Part shown: piece after piece, positions 19,921-59,600 of the stretch
How positions within the stretch are numbered: position 1 is the stretch's first letter
Layout of the letters: every line of letters starts with the position of its first letter
Assembly (NCBI RefSeq): GCF_001194135.2
Contig: NC_068998.1
Coordinates: 49,549,373-49,613,372 of the forward strand
DNA from: Octopus bimaculoides
Taxonomy: Eukaryota
Direction: 5' to 3'
Length of the DNA: 64,000 bases
Notes under the pieces: generated by a model
Seen by the model: only the letters and a program-made list of their open reading frames with translations
Told to the model about the DNA's origin: nothing
Databases searched by the model: none
Translations under genes and position numbers: made by a program

Positions 19921-20374
19921 CTGTAAAATGTTAAACTATATTTATAATATTCAAGTTAAGGTTGTAATTTTGTTATACATTTTAAATACTTTTGTTGAAA
20001 AAAAAAAAGAAACATTTTAAAAACATATAAACGTACAGTTAATACAGGCTTGATAAATGATATTAATGCTTTATCACATAGGAATGTATATNNNNNNNNN
20101 NNNNNNNNNNNNNNNNNNNNNNNNNNNNNNNNNNNNNNNNNNNNNNNNNNNNNNNNNNNNNNNNNNNNNNNNNNNNNNNNNNNNNNNNNNNNNNNNNNNN
20201 NNNNNNNNNNNNNNNNNNNNNNNNNNNNNNNNNNNNNNNNNNTATATATTCAAAAGTATATATGTATATATATATATATATATATATATATATATATTCA
20301 AAAGTATATATGTATATATATATATTCTAAAGTTCTCTTACATTAAACATAACTTCAGTTGAATTCGTATTTCG

Positions 20375-23300
20375 TCACAATATTTGCATAAGTATAAGAA
20401 GAAATGAGGCGTTTAGGCTTTTAATGAAGATCTGACGATCACCGTTCTGTGCCGATTCCGCTGTAGTACCTGGAAAAAACGACATTGATTCGGTTTTGTG
20501 CGTGAGCAATATTTTTGAAGTAAAATATGTTTTGAAGCGTAACATGACTAAGCTATTCATGGAAATTTGGAGTGTTGACAGTAATCTGTTTCTCATTCTA
20601 ACACTCACTCCTCTATTCTCGAAATAAACTTTCATAAAAAGAATTCCAATACAGTTATTGGTTTTTATTGAAACATTTTCACGGCATTTGCTTTGTATAT
20701 GCTTGATATTTATGAACTTGGAGAGATAGAAGCTCAGAATGTGTAGTCATAAATATATATCACATGAAAGATTTTCAGCAGTCCTTCAATTACGCATTTA
20801 TTGAATGCATAAATGATAATTCGTCATACTTTCGGGAGCTTGGAATTCATTCGGTGAAAGATAAATTAAAATCAATGCACAGACAACATTACTTTTTGAC
20901 AGGTCGATATTAATTAACCAAAATCAATCTATTATTTGCGATGTATTTCGTGGAAATACTGATTTATAACGAGAAGAAAAGTATTCTGTATCAGCTTACT
21001 TTTGCACGTCTTCATATATATATTGAAGAAATATGATGTACACCTTTTCGACAGGAAAAAATGACATTTTTCTAATAGAACCAAGCGTCTACAAAATAAA
21101 AAGACAGGAATATATTGCAATACTTTCTCTGCCTGCAATGCAATACATAATTAATCGAACATTAAATCAATGCTATTTTTAAATGTCTGCTATTGTTTCA
21201 AATGAGTAGTCAGTAAAATTAATGAATAAATTGTCCAAACTCGGGTGGGGAAACTTTTTAGAGCGGCGGAAAAATCTTCGAAAGGAAAAAGTCCGCGGGA
21301 GGATCACATGTTCTAACTCTAATATCTGTGTAAATCTTGTATATATCTATGAATAATTTGCTATACATTAATAAAGATAAGTTTAACATAAATTAACGCA
21401 TAACATCTTCTTTAGCAGGCTAAGTGCTGGCCTAGGTATCGAAGTCCTGAATTTATTTTGGAGCATGACAAGTTATACGGAATATTTCTATGTTTGAGAT
21501 GATGTATGTGACTGGAGAGGATTGTAGATTTACTCTATTTGTACCTACGTCTATTTATAGAAACTTTACCATTATATCATATCATTCTCCCCTTCCCCTT
21601 TCAGGTTTACTACTCACTTAAGTACATCCGCACTATATTTTATTTACTCACTTAAGTACATCCGCACTACATTTTATTTACCATATTAGGGCCGTTCAAA
21701 CATATCACCCAATGTATCATTCTCACAAATATTCCTTCCTTACATTCTTACCTCTTCCTTCTATCCCTCACCTAATCTTGGTAGCTCTGCTCTCCCAACC
21801 CCCTCACAATATCTTGAGCACCAACTAGTACTCCGTTTTCAATTTTCTTCTTTCTGTCTTTTTTTCTATCTTCTTTCAAACGTTATTCCTTTTGTCTAAT
21901 ACCATTCTCCTCCTACCATGCACATCTATTCTCTTCTCTCTATCTACTTCCCCTAGCAGTACATTCTCAAAATTTCATTCACACCACAAGATTCCTTTGA
22001 ATGAATAGCTCATAGCAAAATATGAGCTCCTATCGCAAATCTACATAGCATGGACAAGAAGCATTTCTACCCATTCTAACTTTCTCTTTATAAATATCCT
22101 ATAAATTCCACGTAATCTTGGGTTTGTTGTCTCATTTTATTTAACATAGGTATATATATATATATATATATATATATATATATATATATATATATATACA
22201 TATATATATATATATATATATATATAAAGTTGACATAAATATCTCAAGCGTAACAATATCGCACTAGATAAAGCAAATGTAGTAAAAGAATTAGTCCAAT
22301 GTCAGACACAGAAATATTTAGGAAACAATGAACTAGATACAGTGCACATAAATGAATGAGAAGCTAAGAAAGTAATACGATAGACGAGTTAGATAAATAT
22401 TCAAAATAGAAATCAATGCGACAAAGTAAATACTAATTATCTACGTAAAACTATTTCCTACGTAAAACTATTTTAATACAGAAAAGTAAGAACACCACAA
22501 GCCACAACACATACCCTAATTACACAAAGCTGCGCTCGGTAGCACAAATAAAGCGCCTGAAAGTTTAAACTACTAAAAAATAATAATGAGAGTATGTATA
22601 CTTGCAGTGGTCCACATCAGGATTAAGTACGGGATACACTTTCAGAGCTGTAGGGCATAAGGCTTCACTCATTTCTATGCAAAACTCTTTTGCCGTAACA
22701 CCTAGAAAAATAAAATTTCCATATACTGAAACAATTGTTTAAATGCATTCAAAGGAATTTCAGGGAATTCCTCATGCTTTGTTATTTAATACTTTTCTGA
22801 CCAAACGCTAATCAGTTGATATTGCTGGGACATCGGTTAGAATTTTGTGAATAAATATATATATATATATATATATATGTGTGTGTGTGTGTGTGTGTGT
22901 GTGTGTAAGCGTGCGTGTCTTTTTGTATAAGTGTGTGCATATACAAATATATATNNNNNNNNNNNNNNNNNNNNNNNNNNNNNNNNNNNNNNNNNNNNNN
23001 NNNNNNNNNNNNNNNNNNNNNNNNNNNNNNNNNNNNNNNNNNNNNNNNNNNNNNNNNNNNNNNNNNNNNNNNNNNNNNNNNNNNNNNNNNNNNNNNNNNN
23101 NNNNNNNNNNNNNNNNNNNNNNNNNNNNNNNNNNNNNNNNNNNNNNNNNNNNNNNNNNNNNNNNNNNNNNNNNNNNNNNNNNNNNNNNNNNNNNNNNNNN
23201 NNNNNNNNNNNNNNNNNNNNNNNNNNNNNNNNNNNNNNNNNNNNNNNNNNNNNNNNNNNNNNNNNNNNNNNNNNNNNNNNNNNNNNNNNNNNNNNTAATA

Positions 23301-56609: not shown

Positions 56610-59600
56610 TCACACCAAGGTAGATATAATAGGTATCATGAATATGATGTGAGGTTTCATAATGCCAGGCAGGCTAGCGGTCGAATTTGCTACGTTAAGA
56701 AAATAGAAAAACAATTATATTTTAATGCTCATCAAGCATTTCGATTTCAATGCAATTTTAACTTCATGTCAACAAGATTAATATATAAATGCTGATTTAT
56801 TCTTTGCATGGTTAAATTCATAACAGTATATTTAAAGTTTACGAACTGATTTTTTATTCACCATTAAGGGTTACAGAAAGAGCGAACAGACAAGGGGATG
56901 CACATAAAACGATAACCGAGGTTAAAAATTTAAAATATAAAATATAATAGATGACAATCCTGAAATGAGAGACGGGTGTAACCCCACAAACAACGTTCAA
57001 TCAGTGAACCCTTTATGATCATTTTCTTCTCCCTTAAGCAGACACATACACTCAACATGCTTGCCAATTTCTTTCATCTTTTCTCATATACCCTGAGTGG
57101 TAAGTATCTCTCCTCCAGCCTTATTTTCCTTTTAAGGCGGAAAATTTAAAAAATTAACCAAACCAAGGCTGGAGATCTCTGTCACTACTCCTTCCATGGG
57201 TGTTCTCCACACAACCTCTTTTTCCACAGCCACTACAGACAGAAAACACACCTTCCCTTGCCTGTTCAGAGGGGGCGGTGGAACAATCTTTATTATTGTT
57301 TAGGAAGGCAGTTATACAATTCCCAAACGTGACAGTAGTTCTTCGACAGAAACTCACAATTCCGAAATACTGTTCCCACCGCATCTTAGCGAGTTTATCT
57401 CGAACTGGTAAGGCTCCTCGGTAACATTGCCAAACCAGGGAGCTTTGAAAGTCATCCAAAGGTCCCAGGAATAAAGCACTGAAGTGCCTATGCATATACT
57501 TCATACAAAATTTCTCAACGAGAGAATATACAGAACCATAAAACAGCTGACTTCCGAAATCGCTTATAATAATTAATTCGTTTTATTGGCCACAAGGGCT
57601 AATATCAATTAAAAACATATAAGGACAAAGACAGGACGAAGGTTACAAAAGGTTTTGTCCGAAAAGGTAGGAAAGTTCGTCTAAACAGAGGAAGAAAACG
57701 GAGAAAGATATAAATAAATAGATAAATAAATAAGTAGAACTCCCAAAGGGGGGGGGCGCTTCGAAAAGGCAAAGGTTACACGTGGAAAAACCCATAAAAC
57801 CACGGGAGCCTGGTCAGAAAAAATAAGAAAGGGGTATAGAGCCCTTTCTCCTTTTACAATAATGATTTAAATTAGCTAAAATATTTCGTTTTCCAAGCAC
57901 CTAAATTTCGTTTTAATGTTAGAGGGACATCGAATCGCATTAAGAAAGTATAACTTCTTTGTCGTGTGAAATATAATTCGTTGATATTTCGTTTTTGCTT
58001 TATTTACTTTCTACTTTCAAACAATTTAAACACTGAAATAATTTTAAATAACATACCAATGCAGTTATCATGATGAAGCTTGGAGAAGTGTTTCGCACAG
58101 CCATGCTTCACTTTTCCTAAACAGGTTTCATAGTACTCCATACGGCTGCAGAGAATGAAAAAAAAAAAAAAAGAAAAATAGGGAAATATACCAGAGGAAA
58201 TACAATAATCTAGATAATAGTCATTTGCCGTCACAGACAGTACAACATGTCATGCCACTAAAATTAACAGAAATTACCACATGTTCTTGCAGGAAAAAGG
58301 TAAGTTAACTACGAATGTCTATTTTAATTTAAAGTTTAACTTAATTTTATTAATAGCAGTTTTCTCTACATATTGCATTTTTGTACATATTTTGATAATG
58401 TTTGTCAAAAAAAGAAACATTTAAAACAAGACACAAACATTCTTCTTTTGATGTATTTATCTAAAGTAAATTAAAATTTACCCAATTTTAATTAGCATTT
58501 TTGTTCTTTTTCATAAATATATACTTACTCGTGTGCTAGTTCTACACATTTAAAAAAATTTTACTGTCTTAATGTTTTGCGCTCTTGTCCCATTCTGTAT
58601 TATTTATATATATGTACTTAGCTACATAAAATGGAAGAGGAATGACACAATCGACCATTGCAGCGAGGCTTCCTTGGTTATTTGAACAGATAATGAAAAG
58701 GTGTGTGGAGAATGGAGGTCATTCCAGAAAAATTTTGATTTATATAATTATGTGATTGTGTGTTTGTGTGTGTGTGTATGTGTGTGTGTGTGTGTGTGTG
58801 TGTGTGTGTGTGTGTGTGTGTGTGTGTGTGTGTGTGTGTGTGTGTGTGTGTGTGTGTGTGTGAGAGAGAGAGAGAGAGAGAGAGAGAGAGAGAGAGAAAG
58901 AGCGAGAGAAATAGAACGAGAGAGTGTCCCCGTTTGTGAATGTGTTTGTGAGAACGTTTGCTGCCTTCAGCGCTATATCATCAGCTTCATATGGAAAAAT
59001 ATTCCATCAGCATTACCCAAATGATGATGTCATTGGCTTTAAGATACATCCAAGACTTGGACCTTGTGCTATCTGCCCACATAAATCATACCAGCTTCAC
59101 ATAATACAGCCCAATTATTTCACCTCAGTAGGACCGTTTCTTTTTACCATTACACTAAAACACACTAAAGGAGAAACAAACCCCATAAATTTCAAGAAAT
59201 CTTTGGACAATGTTTGGACAATTTCACTTCATTAACAAAAATAGAAAAATACAAGCTGTTGTAATAGAGGAGGTTGTAATAAGAAAACGCATACAAACTT
59301 GCAGTACTCATTATCGGGTTTCTTTTTAGGAAACAGATCCATAGCTTTTGGGCACACCTTCTTGCCTTCTTCGGGGCAATTTTCTTGCGCAGTGATCCCT
59401 AAAAAGTTTAGACATTTTAAAAATGTTACGTGGCACTGATAGAACATTCGGTGAAATCTTAGCAACTTAAAATTTAAGACATCTCTTACAGAGATAAAGA
59501 AACAATAAAAGTAACGAACATTGAGAGTATAAATGAAGCGGATGGGTTAATGAGTTATGTCAAAAGAAAGAGTTAAAAGGAGAAAGAGAGAAAGAGAGAT

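Follow-up and report, generated by a model that had tools for sequence, protein, structure and literature searches.

Alternative splicing decides between a glycosylphosphatidylinositol (GPI) anchored protein and a soluble or transmembrane one in several described systems, among them NCAM-120 (exon 15), acetylcholinesterase (H versus T), CD55/DAF, CD58/LFA-3 and the soluble uPAR variants. The membrane and secreted forms of immunoglobulin mu are made through intronic polyadenylation and alternative terminal exons. Our subject is a tandem array of genes in Octopus bimaculoides for which a switch between anchored and soluble forms had been proposed from the sequence. The array lies in a stretch of 64,000 nucleotides (the window, to which all positions refer unless stated otherwise) of chromosome CM046618.1 (assembly GCA_001194135.2, about 49.55-49.61 Mb). 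It consists of at least eight minus-strand paralogues, P1 to P8, of an uncharacterised family, and the paralogues encode a signal peptide, a helical domain with six cysteines (6-Cys) and a hydrophobic C-terminus. According to the original prediction, the fourth exon (E4), which carries the GPI signal, can be skipped, and the fifth (E5), an exon of the untranslated region (UTR) with a short in-frame tail of its own, then ends a soluble isoform.

We found the underlying observation to be accurate: the gene architecture that it describes is real and is conserved. The proposed mechanism is itself of a well-known kind, in which alternative 3' exons decide on a GPI anchor, and is unproven in these genes. 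The stronger claims, that each gene makes both forms and that the E5 tail is purpose-built, are not supported by anything measured here. We consider it probable that the layout is the ordinary, constitutive architecture of the family and that the main product of P4, P5, P6 and P8 contains E4; regulated skipping is possible but unsupported.

Results

Exon structure and encoded protein

The exons of P2 to P8 were placed by similarity and splice sites. In all seven genes E2 has 100 nt and E3 has 89 nt; the intron phases are 1, 2 and 1, E4 has 110-128 nt, and the precursor is about 105 residues long. When E1 to E4 are joined, P6 (LOC128249786), P5 (LOC128249788), P8 (LOC106870879) and P4 (LOC128249789) equal the NCBI proteins residue for residue. 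The modelled joins are also identical to proteins of the library that was searched, namely P0013 for P4, P0002 for P5, P0001 for P6, P0004 for P8 and P0003 for isoform X2 of P2. The P6 model, with 100% identity to LOC128249786, corresponds to residues 18-123 of P0001, and its gene lies near 49.58 Mb on CM046618.1. No assembly gap crosses an exon or a reading frame. Intron lengths are uncertain because gaps sit in the introns, where an extra exon could be hidden.

E1 encodes a hydrophobic signal peptide and E2 plus E3 a three-helix domain, such that the signal peptide and all six Cys are held in E1-E3. All that E4 contributes is a hydrophilic linker, in which Ser, Asn, Gly and Ala are abundant, a run of 11-14 hydrophobic residues and the stop; the last 12 residues, which come after the linker, have a Kyte-Doolittle hydropathy of 1.9-3.2. 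This C-terminus is predicted to be a GPI-like anchor signal, and the protein is presumably anchored. The anchor-like signal thus has an internal exon to itself and the rest of the protein is complete without E4, which is internal because a conserved intron follows its stop by 27-33 nt. E2 and E3 together form a 189-nt module, phase 1 at both ends, that encodes one 6-Cys domain (for example 36157-36256 plus 35528-35616). Such a symmetric exon pair is open to duplication, which would account for the members of the family with several domains (2 to 8). An AlphaFold2 model based on 28 family members has a pLDDT of 80 and takes the form of a helical bundle. A search of the PDB for this fold gave no match at E <= 0.001, and a Pfam scan of a family protein gave no significant match.

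The coding sequences of P8 and of LOC106870881, the next paralogue outside the window (P10, at locus L007), differ with a dN/dS of about 0.93 over 102 codons (dN 0.28, dS 0.30), and the coding part of E4 alone has 11 non-synonymous changes against 1 synonymous. Judging from such comparisons, the mature proteins appear to evolve near the neutral rate apart from the Cys framework, with the 3' end of the gene held more constant.

The E4 stop, the post-stop motif and intron 4

The E4 stop had been placed 33, 29, 27 and 33 nt before a GTAAG donor in P4, P5, P6 and P8, with an AATTCAA(A)CT motif between the two. These distances were confirmed exactly, and the motif is present in all four genes (Table 1). 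LOC106870881 follows the same pattern, with TGA, 33 nt and GTAAG and an identical 9-mer. P7 is the exception: TAA TAG replaces TGA TGG, the post-stop sequence is homologous but AATTCAACT is degraded, the next GTAAG lies 93 nt downstream (44316), and no exon 5 was identified for this gene. An interspersed repeat is found downstream of E4 of P7 and at two places in P3 (43974-44116, 9972-10105 and 15174-15311, with about 74-76% identity among the copies); it may have disrupted the original intron 4 or E5 of P7.

By count alone, AATTCAACT is within chance in the window (4 copies against 1.7 expected, with 7 of 100 shuffles reaching 4). Every minus-strand copy, however, sits 9-12 nt past the E4 stop of a paralogue, and this position is homologous across the genes and not due to chance. 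Among P4, P5, P6 and P8 the post-stop segment is also the best conserved, with a mean pairwise identity of 0.63; the value falls to 0.55 in E2, 0.48 in E3 and 0.39 in the coding part of E4. Most likely the post-stop segment with AATTCAACT would serve recognition of the E4 donor or another function of the 3' UTR. A conserved hairpin is unsupported, as RNAalifold around the motif and the donor gave only -3 kcal/mol with predicted pairs that exclude the motif.

A stop beside the last intron is also seen elsewhere in the family. In a member from O. vulgaris it lies 21 nt before GTAAGT, in LOC128249836 a TAA stands one nucleotide before GTATGT, and in P2 the stop falls 6 nt past the E4-E5 junction. 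Because these other members have this arrangement as well, intron 4 looks like an old feature of the family, around which the position of the stop codon has shifted.

The original prediction had treated it as established that a stop less than about 50 nt from the last junction escapes nonsense-mediated decay (NMD). The distances of 27-33 nt do fit; what is established is a rule for vertebrates, under which a stop less than about 50-55 nt before the last junction escapes NMD that depends on the exon junction complex (EJC), and its reach in other organisms is debated (PMC6173133). A search for cephalopod data on EJC-dependent NMD found none.

All donors of E3 and E4 are good matches of the GTAAG, GTATG or GTGAG type. 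The acceptors hold on average 12.8 pyrimidines out of 20 for E4, 15.9 for E3, 14.3 for E5 and 11.3 for the constitutive E2. Taken together, the splice sites carry no specific signature of a weak cassette exon.

Exon 5 as a terminal exon

By annotation and conservation, E5 is a real, short terminal exon (about 90-100 nt) from which the transcript gains its poly(A) signal, and the 3' UTR intron before it, intron 4, is likewise real and conserved. NCBI coding sequences enter E5 in P2 and in isoform X2 of P3. In P5, P6, P8 and P10 a pyrimidine-rich acceptor (TTTACAG/G, the slash marking the junction) and a AGAAATAAA poly(A) signal are conserved 66-77 nt apart, and E5 of P8 is about 90% identical to that of LOC106870881. 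The unspliced RNA sequence has neither AATAAA nor ATTAAA in the first 300 nt or so past the E4 stop.

In both of the closest paralogue pairs, the best-conserved block of the gene is made up of the last 300 nt or so of intron 4, E5 and about 100-150 nt downstream. The block at 55692-56112 has 88% identity to 8593-9014 of L007, and 24843-25297 has 71% identity to 32955-33437, both values being above those of the coding exons. Around E5 the similarity within the P8/P10 block exceeds that of the introns and of the silent sites. This conservation could stem from gene conversion or from a regulatory element.

In P4 (19840-19925, minus strand) the site aligned with the E5 acceptor of the paralogues reads TTTTACCGGGCA and not TTTACAGGGCA (ACCGG versus ACAGG). 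The 3' end of P4 is uncertain because the AG of the aligned acceptor is lost; TTTTACAG, about 75 nt upstream, is a possible replacement. An open frame of 110 codons runs through this candidate exon 5 and is probably due to chance.

The reading frame of exon 5

The four tails that had been proposed for an E3-E5 join are correct as translations, and so are the E5 acceptors: GHYPVSKTYS* from 24990 in P5, CEYPLSKQYF* from 33107 in P6, GQVPVSN* from 55810 in P8 and GQKPYNPDS* from 9732 in P3. Nothing is learned from the point that E5 accepts a phase-1 intron, since this exon is not translated in the standard mRNA and phase has no meaning for an untranslated exon. Nor does the notion that E5 has a short in-frame tail of its own hold up, since the tail lengths of 7-10 codons are at chance level. 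A random start on the minus strand meets a stop after a median of 12 codons (P(<=10) = 0.47), and the other two frames of the E5 exons are alike, with 1-16 codons in most cases. The phase-1 frame runs for 64 codons in P2 and for 14 in P4, where the tail, TEVQIIFGAHVRIY, is partly hydrophobic and not hydrophilic.

Between P5 and P6 the mini-frame has 7 differences in 30 nt of E5 (plus the base carried over from E3), and every codon that differs changes the residue. The similarity of the two genes continues unchanged into the intron and past the stop (71% over 489 nt). From these alignments, in which few sites are compared, the E5 mini-frame appears to be under no detectable coding constraint.

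Annotated isoforms

One NCBI product is annotated for each of P4, P5, P6 and P8, and in all of them E4 is included. The claim that every gene makes an anchored and a soluble isoform therefore stands only in part: the layout permits it and isoform X2 of P3 is annotated, but these four genes have a single, E4-containing product. Among the annotated products examined, no anchored and soluble pair comes from one gene. Exact-protein look-ups of P0001, P0004, P0002, P0016 and P0030 in public assemblies, aimed at transcript evidence, returned only the NCBI genome or nothing.

P3 (LOC128249787) has two annotated products, X1 of 112 aa and X2 (XP_052830247.1) of 92 aa, and the hydrophobic tail or anchor signal is in neither of them. 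The alternative terminal exon of X1, with its coding part at 11740-11652, encodes a non-hydrophobic tail of 29 residues; a counterpart was sought in the other paralogues and none was found. Exon 4 of P3 may lie in the gap at 10529-11220.

Because TGT replaces TGA in P2, its reading frame continues for 9 more codons, past the donor and on into exon 5 (...SLCWDSSPL/VG*, with the slash at the junction). The same gene has lost its sixth Cys (4475-4563, minus strand; TAC, Tyr). In its isoform X1 (P0006), of 147 aa, exon 3 is skipped, and E4 and E5 are translated in a shifted frame.

Table 1. Positions in the window of the exons of the paralogues and of the assembly gaps
Feature	Position	Strand	Details
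P4 (LOC128249789) exon 4	20342..20469	-	TGA 20377-20375; 33 nt of 3' UTR with AATTCAACT 20365-20357; GTAAG donor 20341
P5 (LOC128249788) exon 4	26125..26251	-	TGA 26156-26154; 29 nt with AATTCAAACT 26144-26135; GTAAG donor 26124
P6 (LOC128249786) exon 4	34082..34203	-	TGA 34111-34109; 27 nt with AATTCAACT 34099-34091; GTAAG donor 34081
P8 (LOC106870879) exon 4	56577..56689	-	TGA 56612-56610; 33 nt with AATTCAACT 56600-56592; GTAAG donor 56576
P7 exon 4, GPI-like tail (predicted)	44410..44519	-	TAA stop 44412-44410; partial library model P0005
P2 (LOC128249785) exon 4	3461..3573	-	TGT (Cys) where the others have TGA
P5 exon 5	24890..24990	-	strong pyrimidine-rich acceptor; AATAAA 24913-24908; GHYPVSKTYS* stop 24961-24959; 3' end approximate
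P6 exon 5	33010..33107	-	AATAAA 33034-33029; CEYPLSKQYF* stop 33078-33076; 3' end approximate
P8 exon 5	55720..55810	-	AATAAA 55744-55739; GQVPVSN* stop 55790-55788; 3' end approximate
P4 candidate exon 5, uncertain	19760..19920	-	acceptor TTTTACAG at 19921; AATAAA 19782-19777
P3 (LOC128249787) exon 5, start	9704..9732	-	joined to exon 3 in isoform X2 (XP_052830247.1); GQKPYNPDS* stop 9706-9704
P2 exon 5	2070..2263	-	frame 0 stops after 2 codons (isoform X2); phase-1 frame open for 64 codons (isoform X1)
P3 alternative terminal exon (isoform X1)	11630..11740	-	tail (G)CSKEYIGLYKTLKKNFGRSVESVVLNFQ*; AATAAA overlaps the stop
P4 exon 3, 89 nt	21000..21088	-	phase 1 end, one residue past the sixth Cys
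P5 exon 3, 89 nt	27325..27413	-	phase-1 donor
P6 exon 3, 89 nt	35528..35616	-	phase-1 donor
P8 exon 3, 89 nt	58057..58145	-	phase-1 donor
P3 exon 3, 89 nt	11971..12059	-	phase-1 donor
Complete paralogues P4-P8, span	20342..60227	-	ATG-bearing exon 1 starts at 23611, 29751, 36642, 49965, 60227
Gap	22955-23295		P4 intron 1
Gap	20092-20242		between P4 E4 and candidate E5
Gap	25557-25711		P5 intron 4
Gaps	38676-39119, 50621-50630		intergenic
Gap, 692 N	10529..11220		between P3 E3 and E5, where the intron lengths of the paralogues place E4

The gene family and the surrounding sequence

The first exons with the signal peptides of P1 to P8 lie at 678, 6842, 15661, 23608/23611, 29748/29751, 36642, 49965 and 60227, all on the minus strand. 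For P1 only the first exon, MKCLLAFCLLFV with the donor GTAAGTAATT (642-678, minus strand), is in the window, and the remainder of the gene lies beyond its low end. An apparent ninth paralogue at 62139-62248 is spurious, as all of its frames contain stop codons. The window, AT-rich and filled with microsatellites, has 10 runs of N. Eight of these 10 gaps adjoin simple repeats of the TA, CA, GT or TAT type on at least one side; the gap at 18514-19422 does so at its left edge only and the one at 61519-62099 on neither side. A Pfam scan of four long intronic or intergenic open reading frames gave no matches. Dozens of sub-threshold Rfam matches to microRNAs (mir-297, mir-466, mir-3149 and others) were set aside as composition artefacts on CA/TA microsatellites, for example at 3267-3388, 34535-34812 and 25420-25554.

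An exhaustive profile search of the protein library gave 41 sequence clusters for the family. The source was looked up for 27 of the 41, leaving out 14 multi-domain or other members, and the looked-up clusters are all from Octopus (26 from O. bimaculoides and one, P0028, from O. vulgaris) apart from a probable contaminant, P0037. This entry is labelled 'hypothetical protein, partial [Campylobacter fetus]', comes from a contig of 322 bp and almost certainly reflects contamination of a bacterial assembly with cephalopod or mollusc DNA. Word-index searches for orthologues gave matches in O. bimaculoides only. Among the members whose source was looked up, the family thus appears to be specific to octopus. 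The O. bimaculoides genes are mostly on the same chromosome, and every member with a placed contig is on one chromosome. The number of domains per member ranges from one to eight (8 stretches were matched in P0007), and a hydrophobic tail may be present or absent. Nothing relevant was found in the literature on these LOC identifiers or on octopus GPI proteins.

Discussion

In the constitutive architecture that we favour, the mRNA would end with E4, then a 3' UTR intron 27-33 nt past the TGA, and then E5 with the poly(A) signal. With E4 internal and the whole domain already encoded by E1-E3, a join of E3 to E5 gives a soluble product. The tail of such a product would be whatever the UTR happens to encode, and this route would be used, or fixed, in P3 at the level of the annotation.

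Several observations weigh against so plain a reading. Isoform X2 of P3, ending in CKGQKPYNPDS, is exactly the predicted E3-E5 product, and the E3-E5 join is thus competent. The NCBI pipeline reports extra isoforms only when there are supporting transcript alignments; if this holds for P3, some of its mRNAs really join E3 to E5. Pairs of isoforms that differ at the C-terminus are annotated in LOC128249866 and LOC106874740 as well, and family members thus often vary in how the 3' end of the gene is spliced. The E4 acceptors are somewhat weaker in pyrimidines than those of E3 and E5. In the comparison of P8 with P10, only 2 of 24 nt of the mini-frame differ and both changes are silent (AAT/AAC and TAG/TAA), the tails, GQVPVSN* and RQVPVSN*, differing in the first residue only. 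The two genes are, however, 88% identical over the whole 424-nt block around this mini-frame, of which about 300 nt are intron, and the silent differences could be read as a hint of frame conservation at best. Minor or tissue-specific isoforms without E4 are possible in P4, P5, P6 and P8. As for P3 itself, the join may reflect skipping of an E4 hidden in the gap, or a constitutive splice that followed the loss of E4. P3 shows the join and not a switch, because neither of its isoforms is anchored and its E4 may be lost or in the gap.

A possible alternative, though one we hold as tentative, is that the switch is an evolutionary one, with anchored and soluble forms split among the paralogues. 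Since the E3 donor can use the E5 acceptor, a gene for an anchored protein whose E4 is lost or decays, as in P3, would then come to encode a secreted protein. The absence of a visible E4 in P3 and of a hydrophobic tail from both of its annotated isoforms is consistent with this, as are the short tails past the sixth Cys in separate genes such as P0024, P0028 (O. vulgaris) and P0031. However, E4 of P3 may be hidden in the gap of 692 N, and the short-tail exons of P0028 and P0031 resemble exons at the position of E4, with a donor just past the stop, and not E5.

The regulated gene with two outputs that the original prediction had in mind seems unlikely. Here inclusion of E4 would give the GPI-anchored form, skipping of E4 would give a secreted form with a selected, short, hydrophilic E5 tail, and the 3' UTR intron close to the stop would be there to make E4 skippable and yet keep the anchored mRNA safe from NMD. 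The modular boundaries of exons and domain, with a complete domain in E1-E3, would suit such a gene, and so would the match of P3 X2 to the predicted product. The P8 and P10 mini-frames, alike save for the first residue and with both substitutions silent, point the same way, soluble and anchored members both exist in the family, and the conserved post-stop element could be a splicing regulator. However, P4, P5, P6 and P8 have no annotated product that skips E4. The tail lengths are those of chance, and the pattern breaks down in P2 (64 aa) and P4 (14 aa, partly hydrophobic). Every differing codon of the P5/P6 mini-frame changes a residue, with an identity equal to that of the flanking non-coding DNA, and the acceptors of the constitutive E2 are at least as weak as those of E4. 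Additionally, EJC-dependent NMD is unproven in cephalopods (PMC6173133).

A more specific form of regulation is more doubtful still. The post-stop element (...TGA-N9-12-AATTCAACT-N9-15-GTAAG) and the 3' UTR intron close to the stop might together be a regulated device through which a fast-evolving family of surface proteins, specific to octopus, is released in soluble form in particular tissues when the anchor exon is skipped, and P3 might then be a copy locked in the soluble state.

It is very improbable that intron 4 is left unspliced, with transcripts that end downstream of E4 and with E5 elements that are conserved non-coding DNA and nothing more. The analysis saw no transcript of P4, P5, P6 or P8, which would allow it, but the NCBI coding sequences of P2 and P3 extend into E5, the GTAAG donors, pyrimidine-rich acceptors and poly(A) signal are conserved in position, and the unspliced RNA has no poly(A) signal near the stop. 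Least probable of all, and rejected, is a recoding of the TGA in E4 as selenocysteine or by readthrough, with the post-stop sequence coding for W-x-x-N-S-T: P2 and LOC106874733 do have Cys at the TGA position (C-W-D/N-S) and the frame is open from the stop to the donor in P4, P5, P6 and P8, but no selenocysteine insertion sequence (SECIS) reached the gathering threshold and none was among the best 150 of 162 matches with E <= 10, the post-stop lengths of 33/29/27/33 nt are out of register with a 1-nt insertion inside the motif of P5, the E5 continuations are mutually unrelated, P7 has TAA TAG at the TGA position, and the residue would fall in a propeptide that is cleaved off.

The description of the gene structure of this family has value as it stands. 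The conserved 3' UTR intron and its motif can be used for asking whether cephalopods follow the 50-nt NMD rule. There is also a caution to be drawn, as short in-frame tails read from UTR exons are to be expected by chance in AT-rich sequence. If skipping of E4 is real and regulated, an octopus-only family could switch between cell-bound and diffusible forms, for example between a contact cue and a secreted one, and this would be a help in guessing at its biology.

Among known proteins, the RGMs are helical, disulfide-bonded and GPI-anchored, and their N-terminal domain (Pfam PF06535) is likewise a small, disulfide-rich helical domain on a GPI-type precursor. The match to PF06535 has 12 bits (E = 0.26) and stays below the gathering threshold of 24.2 bits, and the fold match to RGMB (6z3m_I) has E = 7.6 and an rmsd of 3.8 A over 58 columns. 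Both are far below significance and are kept as a lead only, not as membership in RGM_N.

With respect to the vertebrate 50-55 nt rule, five paralogues (P4, P5, P6, P8 and LOC106870881) have their stop within the distance, at 27-33 nt, whereas in P7 it would be 93 nt if the donor is used; common descent is enough to account for the narrow range of distances. Compared with immunoglobulin mu, isoform X1 of P3 similarly uses an alternative terminal exon with its own AATAAA in the interval past exon 3. However, this exon is unique to P3, and no anchored isoform of P3 is annotated.

The closest parallel remains with the genes that choose between GPI-anchored and soluble products by splicing. Those systems have documentation for each of the two mRNAs, and a dedicated coding exon usually provides the alternative C-terminus, whereas in the octopus family no single gene shows both junctions in its annotated products and the tail comes from a UTR exon and has chance-level properties. 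What the octopus genes do share with them is an anchor signal on a separate 3' exon, the omission of which would give a product that lacks the signal but keeps the folded ectodomain.

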